Shown: positions 1 through 21,120 of the stretch, piece by piece | How the letters are laid out: the number at the start of each line of letters is the position of its first letter | Numbering within the stretch: position 1 is the stretch's first letter | Notes under the pieces: generated by a model | Told to the model about the DNA's origin: nothing | Database searches by the model: none | Seen by the model: only the letters and a program-made list of their open reading frames with translations | Translations under genes and position numbers: made by a program | Origin: Cyanophora paradoxa CCMP329 | Lineage: Eukaryota; Plantae; Glaucophyta | NCBI GenBank assembly: GCA_004431415.1 | Contig: QPMI01000211.1 | Location: forward strand, 1 to 42,909 | Direction: 5' to 3' | DNA length: 42,909 bases

Positions 1-1654
1 ACGAACAAGACAGGTTCAGTGACGATTCTTCGTTGGTCGACCATCGTGACTCGTACGCAGGACTCCTCCCCGTTCGTCTCCAGACGCCGACACGATGTTG
101 TCTTCGCCTACAATGCTGCAGGTAATTATGAAACCTGTTCAAACACATCATGGGGGCCGGCCTGCTCAAACTAACTGCCGAAAGTGTATCGAACCCGAAA
201 CCGAGGGTTCAAGCAACACTCGCTTGAGGGCGTGGACGAAGAGGATCAATCCGATTTTGAGATCGCCCGCTCTGCCGTAAGACCTTCTCCATTATTTTCT
301 TCAAACTTCTGACGGGCCTGACGATCCGTCCATCTGCCAAGGATACTAAATGCAAGGGCGGCTCCTTTTGTCCAATCGTCAATGAACAGCCATGCAAGGA
401 TTGCTTTCTTTATCCCAAGTTTGTCGTGGATCCGGAACTCAAATTGCGTTTTCCCATCAATCGAGCAAAATGTGGATGCTGCTTGGCGCTTTCTCCGGAA
501 GGTGAAACGCGTTTAGACGCTCACATCTACGGGCAAATCGGGTTTTGTGCTGGCACAAAGCTCTCTTCCGTCGACTCCTGCATCCGAATCCCACACGTCG
601 CCGAATTTGAAGAGATTCACATTAACGATCCACACGGAGCAAGGAGACTTGCGCTGGATTCCAGTTCGACGCGAAGCGCGTTTTGGAAAATTTCAAAAGA
701 TCAGGCTTCGTCCCGCGATCGAACCAGGGCATCCAAAACGCATCATGCTTGGAGACGCACAAGAGCCGGAACTCCTTCGTCTACAGGCTCCGACATATAA
801 AAACTGGAAAGTTCTTGTCATCAATCCAAATTGTCAACCGCAATCGTTTGCAGACCTCACTTCAAATCGCCAGTGCATACTCAAGGTGCATCACAAGAAG
901 ATGTTTCACAGCAGAGTTTCAAACGCTGATGATACGCAGCATCTTGCCGTCGAATACAATCAAGCTGCAAATGAATTCTACGTCGCTCGGAAGCAGAGCC
1001 GTGACAGAAAAGAATTCCTTTACCCGACTGCCATCAACATCCTGCCGGCGCGAGAGAGCTTTCCGCTCACTATTCCTGGCATGTATAAGCTCAAATGCGA
1101 TACACGAGATCAAGGACATAACCTTAAGCTTGCAGGACACATCTATGCGGTTTGCGCACAATCAGCGCACAATCAGTTTTGCCGCATTCTGAGAGCGCAT
1201 CAGATGATGAAGAGAATTCACGAAGTGGAAGACAATATTTGGATGCCAGCACTTGAACGCGAAATCAATGCATACAATCTTCTTGTTATGGTCAGTAATT
1301 TGTTTCCATTTTATAAAATCCTTTTTTGCGACCCATTCGCATTCGCAGTTTATGCTACAGTATAGAGTGACTTGGGACTCAATTTCAAAGCATATCTTTC
1401 AACCACTTCGACTTTGTGACGACACAAACAAGTTCAACCGCCTAGGATGTGTTTGTTACTTCACCAGCTCAGCGATGTGCGTTACGTACGCGCAATGTGT
1501 TCATTACTGGCGCTTTCCAATGTGTTGGTGGACATTGCAGGTCATCGAAACGAGGACGCGACAAAGTCGACGAACAGAATCGCAGCAAGAAGAAGCCGAA
1601 TGCAAACTCTTGAACATTACCAAAAGAGAACTCACTCTCTCTCTCTCTGTATAA
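1..1654 (+). pseudogene. Multi-exon orphan gene, 5'-truncated and frameshifted, with a Cys-rich segment
   Basis: Introns 122-184 (GTAATT..CTAAC..AAG), 277-341 and 1291-1360 all join open frames in phase (..FAYNAA/VYRTRNRG..EIARSA/DTKCKGGSFCP..CKDC..CGCC; ..NLLVM/YRVTWDS). At least one frame change between ~640 and ~900. Confidence 0.55.
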
Positions 1655-1758
1655 GTAGGGAAAAAACATTGTTTCTTGAGCCGGTAAACTCGAAATGTAA
1701 CGGCAAAATATGAATCGGAAATGAAACTTGAGCCTGCACGACAGTGTGAGCCACGACA

Positions 1759-3797
1759 AGGCCACTAGGGCTTCTAAAACAGCCTGCACGGCACTGGATG
1801 CTGATTTTCTCGTTGGCACTGAATCATGTTCTCATGATCCGACAAATCTGAATATTCTTCTCATGAGTGCAGGGCTCAGTTGATCATCTCTTCATTGTCT
1901 CAAGGCCACAAGGGTTTCTGAAACAGCCTGCACGACACTGGTTGCTGATTTTCGCGTTATCACCGAATGTGTTCTCATGAACCGGCCAATGAAACTCTTA
2001 AAGCCTTAAAGGCTCAAATATTCTTCTCATGAGTGCAGGGCTAAGTTGATCATCTCTTCACTGGTTCAAGGCCACAAGGGCTTCTTTAACACCCTGCACG
2101 ATACTGTTTGCTGATTTTCGCGTTATCACCGAATCATGTTCTCATGATCCGACATATAAAGCCTCAAAGACCCAAATATTCTTCTCATGAGTGCAGGGCT
2201 CAGTTGATCATCTCTTCATAGTCTCAAGGCCACAAGGGTTTCTGAAACAGCCTGCACGACACTGGTTGCTGATTTTCGCGTTATCACCGAATGGTGTTCT
2301 CATGAACCGGCCAATGAAACTCTTAAAGCCTAAAGACCCAAATATTCTTCTCATGAGTGCAGGGCTAAGTTGATCATCTCTTCACGGGCTCAAGGCCACA
2401 AGGGCTTCAAGAACAGCTTGCACGACACTGGTTGCTGATTTTCGCGTTATCACCGAATCATGGTCTCATGAACCGGCCAATGAAACCCTTAAAGACGAAA
2501 CCCCCAGATATTCTTCTCCTGAGTGCAGGGCTTAGTTGATCATCTCTTCACTGGTTCAAGGCCACAAGGGCTTCTTAAACACCCTGCACGAAACTGGATG
2601 CTGATTTTCGCGTTATCACCGAATGGTGTTCTCATGAACCGGCCAATGAAACTCGTTAAGCCTAAAAACCCAAATATTCTTCTCATGAGTGCAGGGCTCA
2701 GTTGATCATCTCTTCACGGGGACAAGGCCACAAGGGCTTCTGAAACAGCCTGCACGACACTGGTTGCTTATTTTCGCGATATCGCCAAATCATGTTCATG
2801 ATCAGCCTCAAATTATCTTTTCATGAGTGCAGGTTTTATTTGATCATCTCTTCACGGGCTCATGGCCACAAGGGCTTCTTAAACAGCCTGCACGGCACTG
2901 GATGCTGATTTTCTCGTTGGCACTGAATCATGTTCTCATGATCCGACAAATCTGAATATTCTTCAAGGCTTCTCATGAGTGCAGGGCTCAGTTTATCATC
3001 TCTTCATTGTCTCAAGGCCACAAGGGTTTCTGAAACAGCCTGCACGACACTGGTTGCTGATTTTCGCGTTATCACCGAATGGTGTTCTCATGAACCGGCC
3101 AATGAAACTCTTAAAGCCTTAAAGGCTCAAATATTCTTCTCATGAGTGCAGGGCTTAGTTGATCATCTCTTCACGGGCTCAAGGCCACTAGGGCTTCTAA
3201 AACAGCCTGCACGGCACTGGATGCTGATTTTCTCGTTGGGACTGAATCATGTTCTCATGATCCGACAAATAAAGCCTCAAAGACCCAAATATTCTTCTCA
3301 TGAGTGCAGGGCTCAGTTGATCATCTCTTCATAGTCTCAAGGCCACAAGGGTTTCTGAAACAGCCTGCACGACACTGGTTGCTGATTTTCGCGTTGGTGT
3401 TCTCATGAACCGGCCAATGAAACTCTTAAAACCTAAAGACCCAAATATTCTTCTCATGAGTGCAGGGCTCAGTTGATCATCTCTTCACGGGGACAAGGCC
3501 ACAAGGGCTTCTGAAACAGCCTGCACGACACTGGTTGCTGATTTTCGCGATATCGCCAAATCATGTTCTCATGATCCGACAAATAAAGCCTTAAAGGCTC
3601 GAATATTCTTCTCATGAGTGCAGGGCTCAGTTGATCATCTCTTCACTGGTTCAAGGCTACAAGGGCTTCTTTAACACCCTGCACGATACTGGTTGCTGAT
3701 TTTCGCGTTATCACCGAATCATGTTCTCATAAACCTGCCAATGAAACTCGTTAAGCCTAAAGACCCAAATATTCTTCTCATGAGTGCAGGGCTCAGT
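1759..3797. repeat. Tandem satellite array, ~13 units of 138-167 bp (mostly 158 or 166)
   Basis: Anchor TCATGAGTGCAGG (one variant TCCT) at 1861, 2027, 2185, 2351, 2517, 2683, 2821, 2973, 3140, 3298, 3454, 3612, 3778. Confidence 0.97.
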
Positions 3798-3818
3798 CAG
3801 AGAATGACCCTTGAATAT

Positions 3819-4800
3819 TCATTTGAAATTAAATTCGAGTCTTCTGCCTGAGAAATCGACCACAACTGCAGTTTGAGCAGATTCATCAAAATAAGGAAAC
3901 GACTTCTGTGCTGCTACTAAATGCTCGATGGATGGAGGAGGAACAATGCGAATGAGGTGTGGGTGTCTCCAGTCAGGGACTGTCTCGATTCGATACTGCT
4001 CGAATTCGTTCGGAAACAACCACTCTCTGGACTCCTGTTTCGAAGTATCAACAACATCGAGGTTTGCTAGAATGTTGTACTCGGGCAGCTCAAAAATGAT
4101 GACATGCACTATGTGATGATTGGAAGCCTTGTCGCCATGCTCCTTGAATTCGAAGAGTCCTCTGACGCGCCCGTACCTCCGGACTGGGATGAGAGTATCC
4201 GGTGGCAGCGATTCAAGTGCTTCCATTGAGAGATAAGATCGGCCAACTGGAAGTATACCCCGACCTCGAAGTTTGGATGCAGAAACGCTCTCGACAAAAG
4301 AAAACCATGACGTGTCATGTTTGCTCGAAGCCATATCCACTCCAAAATAAACGAGCTCGTTTGCATAGAACGTTGTGTAGTACACTCCGACGTTTGCAGG
4401 AAATCCTATCCATTTCACATTCGATGACTCTTCCAAAACGCTTGTATCCTCGTACGACGGTTGAGGAGTCCAAATATCAGAATCAGTTCCCCCAGGCCAT
4501 CTATGTCTCAGTTAGAAGTGCAGGAAGCTTCAGATAGTCTGATCCGGACACGCACCGTAGGGCTGCCTGTTCCGGAGCTTCTTCATGTCATCCGGGTACA
4601 ACCTAACCCCTCCTCAAGTGCGTGCTTCTCGTGCATGAATCGTGCGAGTAAACGCGCAAGGGGGCGCAATTGGGGGAATTTGAAAGCTGCCTCGCGTCGC
4701 AGGTACGCATTAAGCAGATGCCCATATGTTGAATTTGGATCTGTTCACTGGGAAAGCAGATTATTCCGGTCAAATCCAGAATCAGCACAATACGCGGAAC
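3819..4800 (-). CDS. Orphan protein, 3' exons of a spliced gene inside the element
   Basis: Open 205-aa ORF 3819-4436 with globular composition extends in frame to an acceptor at 4501. Minus-strand intron 4555-4501 is GTGCGT..CTAAC..TAG. Upstream exon appears disrupted; 5' limit approximate. Confidence 0.55.
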
Positions 4801-5289
4801 AAAACAACACACCTCCCCTCTACTTTGTAGCCGTATCGTGTGTGAACTTTGTATGAACTCCTTGGGACATAACACCTGGCATATTTCGTTGACAGTTCGA
4901 ATTATCGACCAGTGCGATCGTCGTCCAAAAGCCCTGGAATGCGTCCCATGAAATCGTAAAATGCTGCTCGAGCACAGCACATGACATTTTTTCCTTCCAA
5001 GCGGAAATAAGATTCTCGGAAGTGCCCGGAACACTGTGCTGCGCACCACATAGCGCCTTGCGGCGCTCGGAATCAAAGATGTTTGCGCTCCAATGCCAGG
5101 TAATGCCTTCATATCGTGCGCGCCTCTCTCAACTTGAGCAGCACAAACTGCATACGAGGGCTAGCGTGCCATATGGTCAATCCTGCAAGCGTAGCAATGG
5201 TAAGATGACGCCTACATGCTATGCAATGCAAGCAAGCAATGGAAAAAACTAACATGCACGGAAGAAACTCATTCATTGTTGTCCAGAAG

Positions 5290-8200
5290 CTAATTGGCGA
5301 TAGTGTCGTTGCTTCCGTGAACTATCGCAGCAAGTTTGCGAAGCTCAAGCACATAGTCTTCCACAAAACCTGAAAATATGTCGATAATTGAGAGATTGAT
5401 TGAAGCTTGGAAACACTTTTGCACTCGTTGCCCGAAGCAAGTCGAGTTCGTCATCATGAGAATTCTATAGAGGGAATTGGTGTTGTCCAAATCGCTATCA
5501 GAGTTGCACGAAGGACTGATAAGACGCGCGGCAGTTCAGAAAACTTGTTCGTTATTTAGCTGTTGTCAAAAAGTCCGGATCGCGAAACTGCTTGCATTTC
5601 AGAGAACGTCGTTTCAAAAGTAGCTCGAGTAGGCCTCACCTCAGAGCTCGAGTAGTGCATCCACGTAGAGTGGGTTGCTGCGATCCTACAAGCATGTTTC
5701 AGTTTTGGAGTTCCCAGATACGCGTATGCTGGAGATCGTCTCGAATTCGGAACGTCAACGCCGGATCAAACCTGTATGAACTCCTGTTGCAGTGTAAATC
5801 AATCGCTTAATCGAGCAATAAGAAATGATAATGTACTGAATAATGCTGTCAAGCTTTGCTTGGGCGGATTCATCATGCGGAAGAGCGATACCAGAGAGAA
5901 AGGTGAGCCCTACTCGTTGAAAGCATGCATTTGGTCCAGATGACGAGCTCCACATCTGAGCACATCCAAATCGTAATGGTGCTGCCCAGCACGTAAAAAT
6001 TCACTATCGAAAGCGGAGAAGTCCTGTGGAGGTCCAAGGAGGAATCCAGGAAAATTTGCCGTTTCAGCGAGACCGAGAACACCTTCTCGATTATCAGGGA
6101 CACCACCTCGATAATCAGGATCTGATTACCTCTGTTATCGTCTTTTAGAAACTCCTGTAGCTCTTTTTTTGTTTTCAAACCACGCATATTGTCTTGTCGA
6201 GCGTTCTCTGCGTCAATGCCTCGCTGACGCTGGAGGCGGAAGAATGTTAATGAATTCGAAGTATTCTGATGTCGAAATTCGAAACAAACCATAAGCGCGT
6301 CTGTTCGTGCAGAGCGGCCATCATCCTTCTTTGTAAACATGCACTTGTCGCGCCGCCAGTCACCGGCAGGAAGCTCCCAGCACTGTTTGAACTGTGGGTT
6401 GCGAGTTGTTGGCCCAGACAGGACTGACTCTTTTCTGTAAAGGGATTGCCATATACTGCGTTGAATTGTTCTGTTCAACACAAGCTTAATATAATGACAA
6501 GAATAGAAAAAGTTGTGAAAAGAAATAAACATACTGAGACGGGCAGATCCGACCTGACCAGGGAGATCGTCGATGTAAGAACACAACTGAAATATGCATG
6601 CTCAATATCGTTCGTGTCGCAATTCCTATATGGCACGCTTTTACCATTAAGTCATGGATTGGCGAAAAATGGAATACAAAGCTCTACCCAGTTGCTTTTG
6701 AAGAGCATGGATCCACTTCTTTTAGCCATGGGGTTAAAAATAACCGAAAAGGCCGTTGAAGTTGTGAACTTTTCCGTCGATTAGGAAAGCCAGTACGCTC
6801 AATTTTCTCTGCGCTCTTCGTGAGCAACGGACATGTACAAGGACACGGATTGGCGGAACGCAACCGAAATGTGGATGTGCTGTCATGGGGATCAGAATAT
6901 TGGCGTGAAACTCCCGTAATCTTTTCCAGTCCTGTCCCAAAACATGTTTGCAAATCCTAAATATTTGAAGGGATATAAAACGGACCAGAGGTTCTTTACT
7001 GCCGCGTCAGTTGAATACGCAAGAAGCACGCAAATTCCCCGCTTCTTTCCATTTCTGGAGAAGTACTCTTCCATCTTTCACGTAGTACGAAAGTGATCTG
7101 AATCCGTGTAGTCTCGAACCAGGGTTTGACGCGTCTCCCAGTTGCTGAAGGTGCAGTAGTAAGGTGGAGAGAATCACGTTCTGACGAGGCCGCTGGGCTC
7201 CGAACCTGACGAAGTCAGAGGAGAAGAACCACGAAAACTCGAAACATACATGAAACGCTTCAATAGTTGTGGATTGTTCAGAATACTTGCCAGGATTGGC
7301 TCAAAGGAAAAAAGAAGCTCGAGTTGCAGTTCTATACTCAGTGCCACCACAAAGACATGGCGCATTCTTGCTCGCACCACCACTTCTCGAATCGTCTTCA
7401 ATCCAGACTGTATCGCAAAATGAACCGAGATCCTGGAGCTCTCGTTCGCTGTGCAAAGGCGAAACCTAATGAAAGGCTGCAGAATGTTGAGTTCGCTGTG
7501 CGGAACCATTCGTCATAAAACTTACCTCAGCGAATACCGAGACGCGATTCATCATCGAACGCCAGCCGACCAGGCGGACAGGATTTGGTAACTTGAGAAA
7601 GCACTGATTCAAAAAGTTGCTGATATAGCTGAAACTCTCGATAGGAATTTGCGGAAACCGAGTCTTGAGCCTCGAACAAAACGCAGTGTAGCAGCTTCCT
7701 GTATCGAACGACGATAAGATAGTGTCTGGAATAAATTACGGTTCAGTAGCATTGTACGAACTGTTATGGGCAGTCTGTGAAAAGAGCACTTGTATAATCC
7801 TCAGGTTTCGAGCGTTCAAGATCCGAAGATAGAGATTGATCAGAGTTCTCAGCATACTCTTGCCAGATCTCATCAGATTCGGTGAGGTTCCCAGAATCAT
7901 CAGGTTCAATTCCATTTCATGTGCTGGAGATGCTTCTGCCTGTCTTGCCTGCAGCGCCTCGATCGCCTGTTTACGTTGACGTTTTTGGCGCTCTCTATAC
8001 TCTTGTTTTTGGTAGGGCAACATGTACAGTTCCTCGAGATTCTCGGCTGGGAACCCAGCCGTCGCGTAATCGTCCAGACGCCGAGTATCGCGCTATCCGA
8101 GTGCGTAATGCCGGCCGTGCACCGAATCCATAGAAAGCTTTCATTCTATGCATCGCGCTTGTGCGAACCGACACCAGGGCGCCTTTGCATTCTGAGCAAA

Positions 8201-8511
8201 AGCAAGGCTGTGCTTCTTTCACGTTCATGACTGTTTATCTGCGCTGGCTTGTACTTGTTACTCTTAAAGCTTGGAATGTTATGGTAAACACAGCATGGCA
8301 GACGGGAAGTGATCATGAGGGTACGTGTGGTTGGTCGGGGTACGCGATCCATCATTCGAAAGCAACAGACTGGACATTGCAGCGTAGCAGCCGACTGAAA
8401 GAGCTGTCGGACAATTGCTAGAAGCTCTCTCGGTGCTGTTCGGTCGCAACCTTTCCCTCCACGGCCGCCCAGAGACGGGCCGGCATTCGAGGTGCTTCGG
8501 TGGTTCGCCAA
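5290..8511 (-). pseudogene. Degenerate multi-exon orphan gene(s)
   Basis: Protein-like segments (5290-5490, 5873-6586, 6892-7074, 7174-7740) separated by GT-AG introns (e.g. minus-strand GTAAGT..CTGCAG near 7525-7477). Several in-frame stops and frameshifts; no recognisable domain. Confidence 0.4.
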
Positions 8512-11500
8512 TGCAAGTCCATCCTGCCTTGTCTTAAATCTTCACTTCTCACTTATACACTGCTCTGCAGAACCATGCTGCTTCCCACGCCACCGCGCAC
8601 GGTGGAAACGAGACGACTTGCCCATTGTTACGGCATCAAACGCGCCGAGGCGTATCAACTTGCCATACAGTTCAAAGCTGCATTAGAATCGTGCGCTCAT
8701 TCGAATGGGTTCGAATCACGCCGGCGTTCTGAAATCGTGCAGGCCTGGCGACCATTGTCGTCTGAGGACGCAGACCTTCGTAGGGACGCCGCGGAGAAGT
8801 GGCGTGAAGAGTGCGCTTCGATTGCTGTTGTTTATCTGCTGCTCCTTATGATTTGCTGTGCATGCGCAGTCTCGGAACTAAAGTGCAGGAGTGTTTGAGC
8901 GCTCGGACAGCGTTACAGCACGCAGCCGGAACCGAGAAAGGCCTCTCTTTGGAAGCAAGTCCCGAGGAGAACCTGTGTTCTTTTTCCTTCGAGCTCCTCA
9001 GCGCTGTTGAGCAACTCCATAACATCCGAAGAGCGGAGTTGGACGCTTCAAACCCGACTCGTTCGCTCGTCTCCTTGCGTATTTGCGCATTGGTCGCTGG
9101 TAATGATGAGAACGAGATCGCAGGATTCTGCAACTCGCGACTCTTTCGAAAAAGACGAAATTATGGTTGTAAAGCTTTTCCAGGAGTTTCAAGGTTCGTA
9201 TGCCTCCAAATGCCTCAAATGCCTCAAATGATCTTTTTCTCATCGCAGATATTCGTGGCAAGTGTAACGTCGCTCTTCATCATTCTGACGATAGTTTGAA
9301 TCCTTCAGCTTCGGACGGCAATCAGGGTTTGCGCCCCCGATTCTTTTTACTTTTCTGACGACATCGAAAAAGTTTTGCAGACTTCAAGCTCAAGCAGCAG
9401 GGCTGTCGGGAGTTCACTCGAGCGTTCAATTAAATCGGAGGTCGACATAACTGACCAAGAGAACGGTGCAATCCTTTTGGGACATCTTGCGTTCTGTTCA
9501 AATTTCCCTTCGTACAGTAAAGCCGATCTCAAACGCCGCTTCTTCTTCTGGTTTTCGTTAACCTATTCCTGGCAGGTGCATCTCATAAACTGTCTGATCT
9601 CCGCTCTTCTCCTTCCAGAGATTCAGGTCTGGTTTCCTGCATGAAGCGCTTGTCAGACACGTTTTTAATACTAAAGCAGAATCGAAAGCCATGCCGTTCC
9701 CGTTTCCTCAGCTGCAGCGCATGCCCTTCCCGCTGGCAAACACTCCCTCCATCAAAGTGGAAGGCGTGACTCTAATACTGTTTTTTGACGTCGTTAATTC
9801 TTTATAATGCTTTCAATGCAGGATCACCGGCGTCTTCTCTCGCATCAGAAAAGCAAACATCTCTTTCGTCATGTACAGCTGAAGTTCATGAAATGAAACG
9901 CCTTTTTCCTGGAGACCAAGATTGTACTTCGCGTGTGTCTGTTCTCCCATCTGCGATCGAAAGCTTTAATTTGACTCGTTTCGCTACCTTTAGTTGCTTC
10001 CGACCTCTTGACTATGAAGCGTGAGAATTTCAACTTCATGGCTTCAAGGTGTGCACCTCTTTGCGAATCTGTGCACCCCTAATTTGGAGGAATCATGCAC
10101 CTAGCAGGCTCGAGGCGGCAGAAAACAATTTGCACGAGCAGCCTCAAGCAACTGAGCTGCTTCGTCTGGGAAAAGCTCTGATTCGAGAAATTGGAAGCTT
10201 CATCGAAAATCGCGAAACTACAAGGTGCGATCTATTTTGTTCATTTCTCCATTTTTTGTACCTTATCCTGTACAGCCTCTCACCCAATCAAATACTTCTT
10301 CAAACAAAGCGTGAGCGAGAACTTGCAGTTTCGATCCGACAAATTAAATCCGGTATTATTTCAATCAATCAATTTCCTTTCTTTATTCTTTATTCAAGAA
10401 TTCTTTATTGTATCAGAAATCCAAGCGTCTTTTCCAACTCTCACGGAAGGCCTCGACATGACAATGGAGGATTTTATGAACTTCGGTTGGAAAATCGGTT
10501 TCTGGGATTTGATCGCTTACATTTATCCGCACACTCAGATGGTCGACTGAAGAAGGTTCTCCTTCTGTGCGCCGAAGTATCCAATCAACCTCAAAAATTC
10601 ATCGAAAGGCAAGTGTTTTACTGGCGATTTTATTGAGGTTATTGACGATCACTTCTCAGGGTCGATGGACTCAAGGACTCGTTTGCGAGAGATACGTCAT
10701 TAGCAAAATGCCTTCAAATCGCAACGACACTTGCCCATCAATTGACATGTGTTCAAGAAGCTATCACTTCTATAGCTTCCAAAACGAAACTTCGCGGCGA
10801 CCGCGAACTTAGTGGAGCTGACGAGTTCGTTTTGTTTTTTTGGTACAGGTTGTGTTCCTTAACCGTTTTGCAGGCTTGAACTTGAAGAGCTTCAAAGAGC
10901 TATCACAGATGAAGAGGATCGGAAGAATACTCTTCTATCTGTTGTGAAAGACCTGAGAGGGAAGTTCGAAACCTGTACGTCGTCGGATTTTCGCTCTGCG
11001 GTCAGTTTTGAAGAAATTTACCTTGCGCTCAGCTGTGAGTGAGATTCGGGAACGCCAAATCGGACCTTGCGAAGACTCGACGCCGAGTAAATATAAATGG
11101 GGTAACCCGCTTGCTGATCAATTCGCCGAACTTACGGCTCGAAAGCCAAAATGTGCAGATCCGTGTTTCTCATCGTCATTTCTGGTTTTTTATATTCACC
11201 ATGATTTCTTGCTTTCAGACACAAGTAAAGAATTCCAGAAAATGGAAACTCCAATGGATTCGTGGCCTCTCAGTGTACCTCTCCTACACGAAGTATGCGT
11301 AAAGCTTTTTTGTGCGTTTTCTTTTTTTCTTCGAGGAGCTTCATTTTCAAATCAAAGCTTAATACAGGTTTGAAAAACGTCGGAGTGAACGGATATCGTG
11401 AAATTTCCGATATAACGATCAGCGCATTTCTTTCAAAGCTCATCGACCATTTTGGCACATATCGATTTCAAGGATCGAACGCTGAACTGGTACTTTTTTT

Positions 11501-14436
11501 TATTTTTCTCAGTCTTGACATTAACAGCGCAAATCAGCGCAACCATATTCTTCAATTTCAACAGTTTTTTGTCGATGCCAAGTACGATATCAAAGTACCT
11601 GACGACCACATTTTCGCATCACCACCGGAAGGTTAGATTGATCGATATTCACTTGCCTTCAAATTCTCATTTTTGCACAGGATGTGGTTTTCTGGTAAAG
11701 CATCGGGAGGGGAAAAAATATACAAAGTCGGACAATATCCGGATTTTTGACGAAGCTTTAATGCCCATCATCTTCTGCCTCTGGAGAGCGATTTGCGAGC
11801 CGAGGCCGTCTGACTTCTCGAATTGTTATCCCGGTACAAACCTCGAGATTGTCGACTGTAGGTGCTTATGTATTCCATTGTTGGCAGGACTTCGTTCAAG
11901 AATCATACTCGTTATCAAGTTTCTTGCACATAAACTTCAGGTATTTGAAATTCTTCTACAATCACAGGAACCTTACAAACTTTAACAATCACAGGAACCT
12001 TACACGGATCATGTTGCCCAAAAGTATCTGAACTACCGACTCTGGCTATGGCGAAAAGACAAGCGGTCTTCGCTCGCACTTTTAGACGTAAGCCTCTGAA
12101 TATTTTTTCGAAGATGTCATCGGTTGAGATCATTAAATACTTCTGAACAATATTTCAAGGAGTCATCCGGTGAGATCATTGGCTACGACTCCCCGCAACA
12201 CCGGAAGTACTTGGTGAAGAAAAAAACCAATATCGATGCAAAGACTAAGGATCTCACCCGGACCGTACATGCTGCCGATTGGCGTTCGTTTTTGCATTTT
12301 GATTACTTCGAATTCATTTGGACTCTGACAACATTTTTGCAGTGACGCCGTTTCTCAAATCAGATGGCGCTGTTCAGATGTGGGATGGAGAATGCGAATC
12401 GAAAAGTGTCGACAAGGACGCGAGCAGACCTCTTTTGCCATTTGGCGCATTGGTTAACCTTTATTATCCAAGAACTGACTCAACTGGCAATGTCACGAAA
12501 GAGTTTGTTGCCGCTGGGATGTACACTGGTCGAGTGAACATCGAGCTTCTTGTCAAGAAACATGGCATCATCTTGCCAAAGGTTTGATCGTTGTTTGCTT
12601 TTTATAACTTCTAACTGTTCTTTCAGGACAGTCATGGAGTCTCCGTTGAACATCTGGTCGTTGTTATGACGGCGAGACGCATTGGTATGAAAGTTCCATG
12701 GCATTTTCAGGATCTTAGAGTCTCGTCTGTCCAGCAAACGAATGCGGTATGCCTTCAATTTCAGCGAATGACTTCAATTTTTTTCAAATCCAACTTATAT
12801 TGCAGCCCAATATGGAAAGCATCTCGGGACGGTTCAAATCAATCTTCTGGAGAGCTGACCTGATCGAAGAGACTCCTGTGCATGACGAACCAAGCGTCAA
12901 CGAACCGTCCATGTCGCTCGTTGAACACGATCCAGTGCGTGCAAGTGAAAAATGATCAGTCAAACATTTGATTGCTCGCAGTTCGCAGCAATTCCACATA
13001 AGCGCCAAAGAAGACCACGCGTGAGACCGCCGAAGGCCGAAAAGGGCGAAGATTCCGATCAAAACGCGATTGACGATGACGATGACAAAATATCCAAACA
13101 GAGCCTTGAACCAGCGACGAGAGGATACAAACGTCCTGGGTCGTCGAGCAATGGTTCAGATGAAAGGTACGCTTTAAATGTCACAAGAAAGATTTGTCGT
13201 TTGTTATTTACTCTCCAAAGAACGACTGGCGCGAAGAAGCAACGAGCAGTTCAACTCCAGCATTCCAAGGTCTGTTTGTGATGATTTTACCATTCTTTGT
13301 GACGCCGGCCATGAAATGCGCAGGTTGCGGTTGTGATTAAGCCAAAATCTCAAAGGTATTTATCTCAATGCCAACAACTTCGTGACGAAATGGTGTTAAG
13401 GTCAAGACCTGATGTGCCCGAGTCCAAGCGTGTAAGTATTCCCGTGTAAGTCCAAGACCTGAACGCTTATGTGTTTTCAGGTCAAACGTGTTTTGATCAA
13501 GCTTCCGCTTCAATCTGTTGCTCGACGAATCAAAGCAGACAAGCGCAAGCTGGGTGAACCTCCTTGTTTCAGAGAGGTGGAAATGGATGAGTACGACGGC
13601 TGGAATCGCTTCAATTTATTGCGGAGATCCGCTCAGCGCGACGAAAGCGAATATAACTGGGAGATGACTGAAACTGGCGAACTCGTTGTTGTTGGTGTTG
13701 GTTTTGTTATTCCTGAACCCAAGAGTGGGAAGCGTGCGTTAGACTTCGCCTCAGACGTGCGTTAGACTTCGCCTTAACATTAAATTCGCAGTGATTTACG
13801 AGCATCGACTTCCTGCGGTTAACAAGGTCGAGAAAATTCGGACTTGGTCGACTTTTGTTATAACTGAGATCAACAAATTCATCAAAGGCGCAATTCTTGA
13901 TTCTGCGTTCATGTACGCGGTAATGTTTCTTTATCAGTGTGATAGTTCCTTACGATTTGCACAGGTCACATGTTGTCAAAGAACATCAGCTCAACGCTCT
14001 TAGTCGAGAGAGCTGTAAATTTCTCCCGCACGCCTTGTTCGACCACATATCTGACGACATTTCCAAAAATGTGAGTAAATGTGATTTTTAATTATGATAT
14101 GAAAATTTGACGTCATTTGTTTTTTCGCAGTACACCCTTCCTGCCATTTTTTTAGAAGATTATCCAGAAGAGAACACATGGCAAGATCATACGGATATTT
14201 TTGTCGATTCCTCACACACCTCCTCACACACCACCGCTCCCCTCATGAAGCCAAACGGTTCGCAACAATGCGCAGGCGGTTCACCCGGTTTTGTAAATGT
14301 CAGTTTTCCCAGGGAACACGCAAGCAGATCGTTCTGGCGTTCAAGGTGTGACCGTCTTCAAATCTCTTTAATGTATCGATATTTTCGACAGAAGCTAACG
14401 ACGGAGTCAATGGACACGACATTTTATCGACTTTAG
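8500..14436 (+). pseudogene. Very long multi-exon gene (or genes) of the transposon containing a TnpA/ORF2-like domain; partly degenerate
   Basis: Series of short AT-rich GT-AG introns linking protein-like exons (e.g. ..KWRE/DLGTKVQEC.. across ~8810-8869). In-frame stops near 10548 and 12953, and small tandem duplications near 11958 and 13734. Confidence 0.5.
12343..12870 (+). CDS. Tnp1/En/Spm-like (TnpA C-terminal, Transposase_23-like) domain, three exons
   Basis: Phase-0 introns 12582-12626 (CTAAC branch) and 12747-12805 give VNLYYP..EFVAAG..KHGIILPK/DSHGVSVEHLV..KVPW../PNMESISGRFKSIFWRADLIEE. This matches, from memory, the VAxG..HGxxLP..VxV..LP..IxW pattern of CACTA ORF2 domains. Confidence 0.55.
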
Positions 14437-14577
14437 ATGAACTGGAGGATAACGCTCAAATTTCTTGACACAAACTGTAGTAACAGTTTCTAGTGTCAAC
14501 AATTATATTTTTCGTTTTAACACCTCCACTCGCCTTCTGATTCTCGCAGGTTGTCGAGCGCGGGCTGAAACGTGGCC

Positions 14578-14663
14578 GGGGGTGGGGGTGGGGGGGGGGG
14601 GGGGGGGCGGGGGCGGGGCGGGCGGGGGGGGGGGGGGGGGGGGGCTTGGGGCGGGGGGAGGGG
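14578..14663 (+). repeat. Poly-G tract (G-quadruplex-prone)
   Basis: ~86 nt almost entirely G, followed by CCAAGAAC repeats and strand-skewed low-complexity DNA. Confidence 0.9.
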
Positions 14664-15116
14664 ACTTACACCCCAGCACCATCGTTCAAGACATCCACCA
14701 AGACATCCCCAGACACAAGAACCCAAGAACCCAAGAACCCAAGATACTTATTCTTCATACTTCATACTCATTCTTCTAGATACACACACATACTACTCTC
14801 CACTTTTCCAAGTACCAGTACCTTCTACTCTTCTACTCTCTTCTACTACACACCTACTCTTCCATCCAGTCCCAAGTACCCAAGTGCAAGACATATAGAC
14901 ATCCACCAAGCTTGGAGAGGGGGACGGGCTAAGTGGGCACTGGTGGAGGGGGAGGGGACTTCGTTTCCCCTGTTTTTCAGTTATTATTCTCTTTCAAGAA
15001 TTTGTTTCGCGCACCCTTTTTAGATTAAAACCCAAGATACTCATTCTTCATACTTCATACTCATTCTTAGACTTCCATTTACTCTTCCACACACACTCAA
15101 GGCCAACCAACCTCAT

Positions 15117-16076
15117 AGCTCCATAGTTCAAGACGTCCACCAGTGCGAGGCACAAGAACCCAAGCTTGATACTCATTCTTCATACTTCATACTCATACTC
15201 CTCTAAGAAATCATCGCGCCTCACGGTTCGTGCGCGTCCAGCGTACCCCACATCCCCAGCTTCCTTTTCAACAACTGGATCATGTTTTATATTGTCCTCT
15301 TTCTCAGATTTCCCAACGAAATCGACGTCTCCGCAAGTCCCTTTGTTCATACGGCTTTCGAAGTTTGCGGAACACGGACCGGTACCTTTCCCAACCGACG
15401 GGCCACTCAAGGCACCACATGAGACCAACAAAACGTGCAATCAAGGCCAACCGACCTCATAGAACAAGATCCACACACACCCCAGCTCCATAGTTCAAGA
15501 CGTCCACCAGTGCAAGACACAAGAACCCAAGCTTGATACTCATTCTTCATACTTCATACTCATACTCCTCTAAGAAATCATCGCGCCCCACGGTTCGTGC
15601 GCGTCCAGCGTACCCCACATCCCCAGCTTCCTTTTCAACAACTGGATCATGTTTTATATTGTCCTCTTTCTCAGATTTCCCAACGAAATCGACGTCTCCG
15701 CAAGTCCCTTTGTTCATACGGCTTTCGAAGTTTGCGGAACACGGACCTTTCCCAACCGACGGGCCACTCAAGGCACCACATGAGACCAACAAAACGTGCA
15801 ATCAAGGCCAACCGACCTCATAGAACAAGATCCACACACACCCCAGCTCCATAGTTCAAGACGTCCACCAGTGCAAGACACAAGAACCCAAGCTTGATAC
15901 TCATTCTTCATACTTCATACTCATACTCCTCTAAGAAATCATCGCGCCTCACGGTTCGTGCGCGTCCAGCGTACCCCACATCCCCAGCTTCCTTTTCAAC
16001 AACTGGATCATGTTTTATATTGTCCTCTTTCTCAGATTTCCCAACGAAATCGACGTCTCCGCAAGTCCCTTTGTTC
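15117..16076. repeat. Tandem repeat with 367/361-bp unit, ~2.6 near-identical copies
   Basis: AGCTCCATAGTTCAAGACGTCC starts at 15117, 15484, 15845. Copy 1 has a 6-nt insertion; copy 3 is truncated at 16076. Degenerate partial copies near 14683 and 15030. Confidence 0.95.
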
Positions 16077-16090
16077 GTCCGGCTCGAGCT

Positions 16091-16181
16091 CAACCTCGAG
16101 CCTTTCCAAGCTGCTCATGGTTCGAGCCTTTCCAACCTCGAGCCTTACCAAGCTGCTCATGGTTCGAGCCTTTCCAAGCTG
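16091..16181. repeat. 42-bp tandem repeat, ~2.2 copies, built from a TCGAGCCTTTCCAA submotif
   Basis: CAACCTCGAG at 16091 and 16133; the submotif occurs four times. Confidence 0.9.
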
Positions 16182-16530
16182 TTTTTATAATTTCGTTAAA
16201 TGTGCTTCTCATTCGCAGAATGATTGCACCAATCCGTCAACTTCTGGAGAGTTCGCCAATGCGTTCAACAAAGTCCGCAGTTCCAGCCAGTGCCAACAAG
16301 CTCAAGGTTCGAGGTGCGGGACACATTCGTCTCTTCTTCGGGACCTGCCTTATCCTTTCCCAGATAAATATATATGCATTATAGCTAGATATACGCAGGA
16401 GGTATTCTGTGCGACAGCTTTTTCTAGTCAAACTTATTCAGCTACATGTGTGATGGAATTTAAACATTAAATCAAATAGCCACACGCCGCTGGGATGAAA
16501 AGAACGAGTGGGCCAGTTGGCAACGTTCGC

Positions 16531-16722
16531 TATTACACCGACCCCTATTACACCGACCCCTATTACACCGACCCCTATTACACCGACCCCTATTACACCG
16601 ACCCCTATTACACCGACCTGGTCGGAGTAATCGCCCGTGGGAAAACACCGACCTTGTCGGTGTACTAAAGGTCGGCGAAGCACTATTACTCAGTCGGCGT
16701 ACCAGCACATGATCTCCCAGTG
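16531..16722. repeat. Subterminal repeats and putative right terminus (CAGTG) of the En/Spm-like element
   Basis: TATTACACCGACCCC x6 (16531-16618), direct ACACCGACC at 16645, inverted copies at ~16620, 16656, 16670, 16692. Hairpins ATTAC-A-CCGACC-T-GGTCGG-A-GTAAT and ACACCGAC-CTT-GTCGGTGT. Confidence 0.75.
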
Positions 16723-19700
16723 AGAGCTGCCTTGACTCACTGTGGTCACTGAGACAGGCTCCACATGAGAAGGAAAAGTCACTGAGTGATGTATGACTCT
16801 GTGACTTCTTAAAAAAAGTAGCGGCAGCCGCTGCCCTTGCCAGTGAGCTTGGAAGTATGAAGTGGGAAGATCTGCCACAGAGTGGAGTTTTGTGGCTGAA
16901 ATTGGGTATCCGGCAGTTCCATCAATGGAAAGTCCCTTTTTTTCCCTTTTTCTTCCTGAAGTACTGTGACTGTTCAGTGCCGATTCAGAAACTGTTTGAT
17001 TCTTGGCAAACAAGAAATAATGAACATGTTCGCAGGTTGATGAAAAAGCATATGCCATATTCGCACTGCACTGTACAGTGTGATTTCAGAACATTCAGAA
17101 ATGGTTGGACTCCTCACAACCAACATACAATAAACAAAACAAAAAATAAACACCAACACAAGCAAAAACAAGCATATCTGATCTATGGAAAGTCCCTTTT
17201 TTTCCTTTTTTCTTCCTGAGAGAGAGATGAAGCAAAAGACACGCCCGTGGACCAGGAAGCAAAAAAAAAACATCTTGGCATGTACATCAAAAAGAAAAAC
17301 AAATGTTCCACAATGTTCAAACAACAAAACATGACAAAAACAAACAGAACAAACAGCACCACAACACATGCACAACACACAGAACAGAAACTTGCCAAAT
17401 TAAAAATGAAGAGCTTGTACTTGCATTGTTTGTTTCATAAAACAAACAACATTCTTTTCTAGATGGTATCTGTGTTTTGATCATAATGTGTGCATTATTC
17501 ATCATAACATCGCTGCATGCATAAAATATTTTTGCATGTTGCATGTATTGTATTATTGGCGTTGTTGGCCCGCTCTGCTGTGCTGTGGCTGCCCAGCTGT
17601 GCTCCCAGCCCGTGCGCTACACGCGAGATTGCCCCGAGGGGTGGTGGGGCTGTATTGGGAGCCGTGGTGCGGTCCCGGAGGGTACAGCGAGACTACTGAC
17701 TGGGGTACATGGTATGAGTGGCTCGACTCAGTGGAAACCAGGCTGGCAACATCTCCCTCACTGGTACGACCACGTCCACGTGGTCCACATCGGAACGGCA
17801 ACGACTACGCCCGCGTGGTCGGGGCCGGGACGGAAAACGCCTAGGCCTGGCAATGAACCAAGGGCCAGAAGGGGTACAACTCTCAAAGGCCGTCCGAAAG
17901 ATCGAGGGGTACGCCGAGGGAACGAGGGGTACAGGGATCTCCCTCACTGGTAAGGCGAAAGCTACCGAGGGGGGATCTCCCTCACTGGTAAGGATGAAGC
18001 CACTACGGAACTGCACGAGAAAGGACAGGGATGAGAAAGAACCCGCTATCCAGGGCAGCAGCGAGGCGCGAGGTCTGAAGAGGCCAAGCCACTGATGGGA
18101 CCCTGGGGGCCATACAGAGAGGCACCGGCACTTGCATCCCACAGCAAGAGACCAGGCAGAAAACCACCACCCAACGGGAAAGGAAATGGGAAGACTCAAA
18201 AGAGGAATGGAGAACGGCAAAGGATGCAAGGGGGCAGGGCCCGGGGGACATCGACGTCGGGGTACAGCACGTCAGCGACGGGGAGGGGCGGCTCGGGCAA
18301 TCACGGCCATCGTAAAGACGGGTGTGACGCGCGGCACGCAAGGTAAGTCTGGTCATCTTGAAGCCTCGATTGCGAGTGGCCGCATCTGAGCAAGACAGCA
18401 AGAGGGATCGGTCAGAGCCATCCTTCCGCAGGGGCCATCACTCAGGCGGGAGGCTAGCAGCTCGGGACCGGCGAGGCAACTCTCTTTGGGGCTCCAACGG
18501 GCCATGGCAGGCTATGCGACTCATCGGATACATCATCCGGGATTGGAAGGGGCAACGCCGCATCGGATACATCATCCGTGGGCCATCGGACAGCGATAAG
18601 GGTCACGACTGAACGGCGCGGGGGCCGGACTCCCAGTCGGTTGCGACAGACTCTCAGTCGGAAGCAAGATAGACTCTCAAAGCTCATAGACTCTCAAGGC
18701 GACTGGCATGGGTAGCCGAGTCGCGGGACACGCATAGATGGTTCCCTTCTAAGAGCGACTCTCGGGGGGCGAGCTGCTAATGCGACGGAAAGAATGAGAG
18801 AGAGCGTATCTTCAGCGTGAAGATGTAGCTTGGTCGCCGCCTCCAGTCCGTACGCGCAGGTCCGGGCGATCGCGGCCAAGCCTTTGAAGTGCGCGCCGGT
18901 CTGGTTGGGCGGACTCCCGGGACGCGCAGCACTCGCAGACAGCGCTCGCCTTTGGCGCCCTTGCTCACGCGCGCGGAGCGCGGCGTGTTGAGTCGCTGAG
19001 GTACGCAAGCCGAGGCTCATGCCGGAATCACCCGGCCTCCGATGCGCGATGGCGCTGATCGACGTGGAAAGAACACCAGCTCTCGATCAGGCCGCACGGA
19101 TTACGCTGGAATCACCCAGCTGCCAAGGCTGCTGCAGGCGGCACGGGAATCACCCGACGGTCCGACGCGGTCCAGCGCGCGAGCGAGGGCCGGTCGCGGG
19201 CATCACCCGGTGCTGCTGCTGACGAGCACATCGCTACGGTCGCGGTTGGGATCGCCGTCTTCTTCTCCTCCCTCCGCTTTGAAGATTCGGCCTCCGTGCC
19301 GATCGTCCCTCCTTCTCGTAGTCCAGCGATCGCGCGCACTCTCCACCATGTAGAATCCACGGACTCTCCACCGGCGCATCGACGTCCGCAGCGTCCGTCG
19401 ACGGGGCCAGCGGCTGTCGCGGCGAGGGTATTATTGGCGTTGTTGGCCCGCTCTGCTGTGCTGTGGCTGCCCAGCTGTGCTCCCAGCCCGTGCGCTACAC
19501 GCGAGATTGCCCCGAGGGGTGGTGGGGCTGTATTGGGAGCCGTGGTGCGGTCCCGGAGGGTACAGCGAGACTACTGACTGGGGTACATGGTATGAGTGGC
19601 TCGACTCAGTGGAAACCAGGCTGGCAACAATTGCAGCAGTGATATACTGTCCAAGTCCCTGTACATGTAGCCCTGTACCCCTGTAGCTCAGTCTGCCTGT

Positions 19701-20440
19701 ACCCCCAAGACACCACCTTGCCAGCTATCTAGCCTGGCAATACATGCATGAAATGCAATAATCAATGATTGATCCATTCTTGATCAATTCTTGATCACCT
19801 CTTGTACAACCTTGCCAGGTTGTTTTTGTCATTCTTGTTTTTGTTTGAAGTTTGTTTGTCAGCTTCTTGCAATTGTTCAGTGCCACAATGTGAACGTTCA
19901 AGCTTCTTGCCCATGTTCCTGCTAAGAATTGCCCTTTCTTTGCCAGCCATGGCCAGAATTTAACACCGAAACTCGATGTTCGATGACAGATCTAGATTAA
20001 AAATGATCAAACCTTTAAAATACATTGCGAAGAAGAAGAAGAGTATGTTTACACTGTGACACATCGCATTGTTTCGTGATCACTTCAGCATTTCTAGATC
20101 TGTTCTGAAATGTTCTCTTCTTCTTGTTCAGTGCTTCAGCTTCATTTTCGTTCTTTGTAATATGATTGAACCACAAGAGATTCATGCATTCAATTTCATT
20201 TCAAACTTCTTGCAATTGTTCAGTACTTTAGCTTTTCTTCTCATTTTCCTGTCTAAGCTAACTTCATTCTCATTCTTAAGCTTTGTTCTAATTGATTAGC
20301 AAAAGAAGAAGAAGAAGAGCCAATAATTATAAGCCAGGCCGGCGCCAGCCATTTCAATATAATATCATAAGAAGAAAAAGAAATCAAACATCCCTAAATA
20401 ACACTGGGGGGGTGCGGGGGGGCGGAGCCCCCCTGCTTGT
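16723..20440. mobile_element. AT-rich, CpG-poor non-coding element, interrupted by the LTR insertion; possible Helitron-like 3' hairpin
   Basis: Flanks rejoin across the ATTG TSD. 39-bp direct repeat at 16921 and 17181. Ends in hairpin GCGGGGGGG-CGGAG-CCCCCCTGC (20414-20436) followed by TTGT. Confidence 0.35.
17551..19629 (-). mobile_element. Non-autonomous LTR retroelement (TRIM/LARD-like), recent insertion
   Basis: Apparently identical 201-bp direct repeats 17551-17751 and 19429-19629. ATTG duplicated at 17547-17550 and 19630-19633. Minus-strand PPT-like AGTGAGGGAGA directly before TGTTG of the left LTR. No gag/pol ORF. Confidence 0.85.
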
Positions 20441-20445
20441 GAAGC

Positions 20446-21120
20446 TTGAGATAATCGGATTCAACCCCCGGGGCCCGTCCCGGATCGAAGGGTCTCGCCC
20501 AAAGCCCCCGGGGACCGGGGGAGCTCAGTGGTCACGTGCCCCGTGGGACGATGGGGTCAGCCCCTCAGGGCCGGGGTAACGGTCCCGCCGCCGGGGCCTG
20601 AGAGCTCGAGGATGTCATGCGGGCGCGCCGCGGCGGTGGCCATGGGCCGACCGTCGGACGTTCAATGCCTCTCCTCGAGCTTCAAGGCTTCGAGGCTCGG
20701 GCCAACCGCGGAGGGCCGGCCCTCATGATCACCTTCCGAAGTTCGATTTCTGATCACGAGGGCCGGAGCCTCGGAAGTTCGGAAGGGTTCCGGCTGGGGG
20801 GCCTTTGAACTAGTACTTGAGACTCGTAAGAAAATTTCGAGTTTTCGATCTTTAGGGTTAGCTATAGGCCTGAGGGTTTGCGCGATTCATCGTGACGTGT
20901 TTCATGAGCAAGTTTCACTGCCCCGGAGTCCGACGGTCACCGGGCCTCGGAGCTCGAGTCGGCTGAGGCCCGGGAGGGGGAGGGGGGCCCGGGAGCTGTA
21001 CATGGCCAGAGCCTTCGAGGCTGCGAGGCTCGGAGGAGACCGCGCGACTCTAGCGCTCACTGAATCAGTGAGCTGGCGTCCAGGAGATTTGCCAAAATAG
21101 TGAATCTGCATTGATCTCAA
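20446..21120. mobile_element. Possible small non-autonomous TIR element (MITE-like)
   Basis: Imperfect terminal inverted repeats TTGAGATAATCGGATTCA (20446-20463) and TGAATCTGCATTGATCTCAA (21101-21120). Internal hairpins at 20716-20766 and 21055-21073. No TSD identified. Confidence 0.35.

Follow-up and report, generated by a model that had tools for sequence, protein, structure and literature searches.

A probable CACTA-like transposon with a divergent transposase gene and a head-to-head partner gene in the glaucophyte Cyanophora paradoxa

Positions 1-16722 of a 42,909-nucleotide stretch of the Cyanophora paradoxa CCMP329 genome (contig QPMI01000211.1 of assembly GCA_004431415.1, positions 1 to 42,909 of the forward strand; hereafter, the window) form a compositionally distinct block that ends in a CACTG-type terminus and is quite probably the right part of a CACTA-like transposon. 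The block carries three genes, designated A (partial), T, and B, which lie on both strands and are interrupted by short GT-AG introns, mostly 40-80 nt; an examination of 14550-16500 for genes found no clear gene. GC content ranges from 41 to 54% across the block (about 47% overall), which is CpG-rich, against 75-85% in the host genes of the right half of the window. The observed/expected ratio of CpG is 1.0-1.2 in the block genes versus 0.29 in the flank at 16723-17550, and the number of CG dinucleotides per 200 bp drops from 18 (16500-16699) to 2 (16700-16899). The simplest reading of this contrast is that the block would be a young insertion into older, CpG-eroded DNA. A Markov change-point, however, falls near 16981, beyond the CAGTG at 16722, and composition alone is therefore insufficient to fix the end of the element. 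An earlier, first-pass annotation of this DNA had described the distinct composition, several tandem arrays, and a CCGAC-repeat terminus ending in CAGTG at 16722, all of which we recovered; it had also counted three or four spliced genes on both strands, of which we find three.

The terminus itself is sharply structured. A 12-bp subterminal motif (TATTACACCGAC) occurs in 11 copies on both strands within 16531-16704, arranged as six tandem 15-mers and five dispersed copies that stand in both orientations and form inverted pairs; subterminal repeats in both orientations, as expected of EnSpm/CACTA elements, are thus present. A gap of 14 nt separates the last copy from the CAGTG at 16718-16722, and the right terminus (16712-16722, minus strand) reads CACTGGGAGAT on that strand, adjoined on the plus strand by AGAG. 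This end fits the CAC..GTG termini of the EnSpm/CACTA type, the left end lying outside the window, while the TGT..ACA or CATCA..TGATG termini of the Plavaka type were not seen at the right end, which is CAGTG. Compared with metagenome contigs, the terminus gave two matches, both at chance level and in GC-rich contigs, and compared with viral contigs it gave none.

The first-pass annotation had placed the transposase further left, beyond the window. We found it within: gene T (3819-8228, minus strand), an intron-rich gene of about 1,200 amino acids that resembles CMCT-type (EnSpm/Plavaka-related) DDE transposases in its relatives, motifs, and a fold match, had been masked by deletions in the assembly. 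A clean splice model fits T poorly (score 107-154, versus 566 for gene B). Three short-read DNA runs and one RNA run were compared with the assembly over 3800-9700, a region that each DNA run represents as a single unbranched contig of 10.6-10.9 kb. All three DNA runs show the same differences from the assembly, namely 61 gaps with a net 61 extra bases and 6 substitutions, and among the 12 insertions listed (of 59 indel rows), 10 extend a homopolymer. When the listed short-read bases were applied to T, all three stops disappeared from its last three exons with the phase kept, and the match of two of these exons to the exons of relatives rose from 15 to 42 and from 139 to 160. The frameshifts of T are thus sequencing deletions with a long-read error profile. 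Two other causes of the stops were rejected, CpG decay (CpG is not depleted, and the missing bases are present in the short reads) and recoding of TGA (the missing bases are present in the short reads). The roughly 60 single-base assembly deletions are concentrated between 4482 and about 8300 (approximately 1.5 per 100 bp); none is listed for 3800-4481, and 8400-14200 has 97% of its words in common with the short-read runs.

An exhaustive search with the last exon of T (3822-4500, minus strand), which encodes a predicted beta-barrel C-terminal domain, returned three real relatives at 36-50% identity (E 1e-27 to 4e-20); a word search with the same exon was blank. One of these relatives is a Cyanophora paradoxa EukProt model, another comes from a separate sample, where it sits on a 10.6 kb contig (L004), and at least three different T families were found in this search. 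The L004 contig, which derives from short reads, is colinear with T from 8219 to 4143, with roughly 14 of the 20 exon pieces scoring clearly higher than shuffled sequences, and the frame changes on the window side are mostly single missing bases. A second, divergently oriented gene on L004 is a homolog of gene B in the same head-to-head layout as in the window, as three consecutive B exons match it in order with a score reached by none of 1000 shuffles. The match to T, together with that of the B exons, therefore identifies the head-to-head pair as a conserved core. Two distinct T families (L003 and L004) come from a single run, ERR10034898, a further contig (L005; European Nucleotide Archive sample SAMEA7319890) hardly differs from the L004 copy, and the position of the last intron is common to L003 and the window T.

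Gene B (8575-14468, plus strand) has about 30 short introns and a stop-free model of approximately 1,390 amino acids with strong splice sites. The spacer between the divergent starts of T and B (8229-8574; about 350 bp, and about 380 bp in L004) is probably a bidirectional promoter. Over three exons at 12435-12880 (plus strand), the B product shows a succession of VAxG, HG, VxVxxxV, P, and W, which, by eye, we take to resemble the TNP1/Transposase_23 domain of TnpA proteins. Proteins of the TnpA type are fast-diverging binders of subterminal repeats (PMC2613891), properties that fit the position and weak conservation of B, and by this analogy B is probably the TnpA/TNP1 counterpart of the element. 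An HMG box at the start of B and a Ulp1 domain at its end were considered and rejected, as no support was found for either. At the stop of B, one extra base would leave the reading frame open across a 73-nt intron (14477-14549) and into a tail rich in RG and G (window 14392-14700), and GRGRGRG stands near the end of the L004 homolog; this stop may be another deletion error.

Both copies of T, in the window and in L004, keep an N-terminal CxCxxC, a four-Cys ribbon, and the motifs LAYSTD, FLTPWL, IDDLPG, RCGxRHxDxxH, and ERGxHxxK. Within this set (all on the minus strand), LAYSTD would supply the first catalytic Asp (7006-7008) and IDDLPG the second (6566-6571), both motifs being identical in L004; RCGxRHxDxxH (5925-5957), with its DxxH conserved in L004, is a possible replacement metal site; and ERGxHxxK would supply the catalytic Glu (5128-5130), with GP standing nine residues upstream of ER in L004 (GP-x9-ER). 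Three earlier by-eye candidates (CPPGRLAF, SDLP as the second Asp, and an E near 4910) were overturned by the comparison with L004. In a fold search of the Atlas with a model of the T C-terminal domain, the top match was a cluster composed 100% of Plavaka transposases; Foldseek and VIA against the PDB returned only Tudor/SH3/BAH-like barrels with Z below 4.

Considering end structure and gene content together, the block at 1-16722 quite probably represents the right-hand portion of a cut-and-paste transposon that is young, low-copy, and probably intact and autonomous, and that stems from a divergent lineage of the CMCT type, related to EnSpm/CACTA/Plavaka. The element would measure at least 13 kb, and its length would exceed 16.7 kb should gene A be part of it. 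Several observations weigh against this reading. First, the left terminal inverted repeat and the target site duplication would lie beyond the window, so that of the two ends only the right one was seen. Second, the families are assigned from consensus patterns rather than from profiles: the order and spacing of the two putative catalytic Asp residues, DxxH, and GP-x9-ER follow the TnpD/Plavaka consensus, the proposed D/D/E catalytic roles and the TNP1 assignment of B are likewise drawn from consensus patterns, Pfam gave no match on single exons of T, B, and L004 (spliced models were searched exon by exon, with Pfam run on about 60 pieces), and it was blank on the separate B exons over 12435-12880. 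Third, the Plavaka fold match is weak (TM 0.34, from a model with a pLDDT of 51). Fourth, T would be intact outside its last three exons by extension from the 12 of 59 indel rows that are listed. Fifth, for 3800-9700 the short-read runs gave one unbranched contig each and, down to 85%, no diverged copy, so that this region is single-copy or present as identical copies only; the RNA run yielded no contig over it, which is not proof of silence. Finally, the zinc-binding signature common to the CMCT clade was not found. A C(2)C after the second Asp is absent from the L004 exons and from all window frames adjoining that residue, and no H(3-4)H precedes the last Glu, as neither L004 nor the window exon has a His pair ahead of GP-x9-ER; this loss could also mean a loss of activity.

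These missing motifs bear directly on how the element is classified. It may be an ordinary giant EnSpm or Plavaka element whose C(2)C and H(3-4)H escaped notice, either because exons were called wrongly or because the conserved HxDxxH contains them. In keeping with this, in both T copies HxDxxH can formally be read as H(4)H, the exons are modelled rather than read from transcripts, and a shifted L004 frame near 7550 has one Cys about where one is expected. We nevertheless consider this explanation unlikely, given that the frame after the second Asp is set by the homology of the two T copies, that no Cys pair appears there even with two missing bases allowed between codons, and that L004, derived from short reads, has no His pair ahead of GP-x9-ER; HxDxxH, the sole H(3-4)H-like pattern, lies far upstream of it. 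The absence of both halves of the zinc site from two divergent copies suggests instead a trait of the lineage, with wrong exon calls or a shared inactivity as the other possible causes. Tentatively, the window and L004 may thus represent an undescribed CMCT lineage in Cyanophora and one other sample, in which an active transposase has lost both halves of the C2H2 zinc site, perhaps having a conserved set of Cys, Cys, His, and His around DxxH instead, and is accompanied by a separate divergent TnpA-like partner and further cargo. Given that C(2)C and H(3-4)H were not found, we file the element as CACTA-like rather than as a proven EnSpm member. The En/Spm identity proposed by the first-pass annotation therefore finds support in the terminus, in motifs like those of transposases, and in the conserved two-gene core, but not in the zinc signature.

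Gene A (1-1613, plus strand) is the 3' part of a spliced gene, recognized from its frames and five short introns. It has no relatives in Pfam, a word search, the Atlas, the PDB, or PHROGs and no convincing match in L003-L005; a SET domain was considered for it and rejected for lack of support, and deletion errors may be present near 600-750. The first-pass annotation had regarded the genes of the block as orphans with accessory roles, a description that now suits only A, as T has relatives and B is a conserved core partner, which leaves A as the sole candidate cargo. By analogy, we lean modestly towards its belonging to the same element as T and B, and our best guess, modeled on the accessory genes of Bostrychia elements, is that it would be an accessory and possibly anti-silencing gene. 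In L004, the 390 bp beyond T contain no counterpart of A or of the 166-bp satellite that separates A from T in the window, and this DNA is CpG-poor. This would be expected if T and B were an immobile or domesticated pair derived from a CACTA element, or if the block were a composite in which the CAGTG end, the T-B pair, and gene A stem from different adjacent insertions. Such an origin also accords with the single or identical copy, the loss of the zinc motifs, and the short-read contig stopping at the satellite and at a G tract (14578-14663, plus strand). We judge it rather improbable, however, given that composition and intron style are uniform over the block and unlike those of the host genes, that CpG is not eroded, that the end structure is crisp, and that there are at least three different T families.

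An endogenous viral fragment or a horizontally acquired island, which the low GC content and the genes without database names might bring to mind, is very improbable and largely refuted by the dense spliceosomal introns, the CACTG end, and the lack of viral relatives. Specifically, no viral relatives or phage families (PHROGs) were found for the block genes, nor any capsid, packaging ATPase, polymerase, or integrase gene of the kind expected of an endogenous virus or Polinton; the first-pass annotation had named viral hallmark genes as evidence that would speak against a transposon. More generally, PHROGs, a PDB sequence search, and two Atlas feature searches with the block genes were blank or at chance level.

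If the CACTA-like reading holds, its workings can be sketched by analogy with TnpD and TnpA, which in En/Spm are products of a single alternatively spliced unit. T and B would be transcribed from their shared spacer, B would bind the CCGAC subterminal repeats and bring the ends together, and T, as the DDE enzyme, would cut at CACTG/CAGTG and insert the element, duplicating 2-3 bp of the target. The insertion domain of T appears to have lost or replaced its canonical C2H2 zinc site.

Neither the size nor the cargo of the element is new, as giant EnSpm elements with cargo have already been described. Giant EnSpm/Plavaka elements reach 17.4-19.1 kb in the red alga Bostrychia (bioRxiv 10.1101/2025.02.11.637652) and 16-20 kb, with 4-5 open reading frames (ORFs), in Chondrus (PMC6431247). 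Taken together, the elements of these two algae span 16-20 kb and 3-5 genes. The window element is like them in its size class, its DDE transposase with further genes, its internal tandem repeats, and its algal host; it is unlike them in that no SET, methylase, or 2OG-oxygenase gene was detected in the block and C(2)C and H(3-4)H were not found. Its CACTG end also sets it apart from fungal Plavaka elements, which have TGT or CATCA ends (PMC12730594). With the plant CACTA/En-Spm elements, such as En-1, Tam1, and the 20.5 kb soybean Tgmt* (PMC2613891), it shares a CACT-type end, subterminal repeats in two orientations, and a transposase with a large, many-exon partner bearing a TNP1-like pattern. 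En/Spm produces TnpD and TnpA from one alternatively spliced unit (PMC2613891), however, while T and B are two head-to-head genes, and no match to PF02992 or PF03017 was obtained on single exons. The CA..TG-type end and the putative D, D, E, and DxxH are like those of the CMCT clade, whereas its common C(2)C and H(3-4)H motifs were found in neither T copy. Finally, the Plavaka-flanked giant repeats of Amoebidium (PMC11244446) are likewise large gene-bearing elements of a protist genome, but they consist of tandemly clustered, intron-poor genes and have tyrosine recombinases. For C. paradoxa, a PacBio assembly, many short introns, and an unclassified repeat fraction of 11.5% of the genome have been reported (PMC6704402), and no description of such elements in glaucophytes was found in the searchable literature. 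What appears to be new, then, is a divergent transposase family that has no Pfam match and has apparently lost the CMCT zinc signature, together with the head-to-head layout and a glaucophyte as host.

Several further features occupy the block and its surroundings. The 166-bp satellite (1757-3797; about 12 copies) lies where the 3' ends of A and T face each other; seven of its units contain TTATCACCGA, which is near the subterminal core TTACACCGA, and the idea that it derives from the terminus was rejected, as the similarity is not beyond chance. A 361-bp tandem repeat (15117-16084; 2.7 copies at 98%) has an 82-nt intron-like piece in each unit, short-read contigs stop at about the G tract, and further arrays in the block consist of 42-bp (2 copies) and 15-bp (5.9 copies) units. 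Beyond the terminus, the DNA at 16723-17550 (CpG observed/expected 0.29) and 19640-20400 (0.38) is AT-rich, TG/CA-rich, and CpG-depleted, which suggests old methylation-eroded repeats in a genome that is otherwise CpG-rich. Clusters of the words CACTGAG, CTGAGTCAGTG, and GACTCA at window 16728-16800 and 21050-21070 and at L004 10528-10616, adjoining element ends, may be footprints or preferred target DNA. A 217-bp direct repeat (17550-17766 and 19428-19644; 97%) flanks about 1.7 kb with 63% GC and short internal repeats, in which two ORFs gave no Pfam match; this is possibly a separate element, either long terminal repeat-like or duplicated. The host genes (21900-42800; approximately 80% GC) include a multi-RRM gene (34.9-38.5 kb), a rhomboid gene (39.6-40 kb), and a ClpX-like AAA gene at about 41 kb (AAA_2 match), and a weak HATPase_c (histidine kinase) match, below cut-off, lies at about 29.9 kb.

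The practical lesson of gene T is that local long-read deletions can mask a transposase and make an element seem dead or non-autonomous, and other elements of the same assembly that look broken or transposase-less may be similar deletion artefacts. The head-to-head layout of a two-gene CACTA core, in turn, has been kept despite a protein identity of only about 35-50% between the elements. If the proposed lineage is real, it would represent an additional deep branch of the clade from which RAG1 arose, and a test of whether these transposases need the zinc site of the insertion domain, a C2H2 site reported to be common to EnSpm, Transib, and RAG1.

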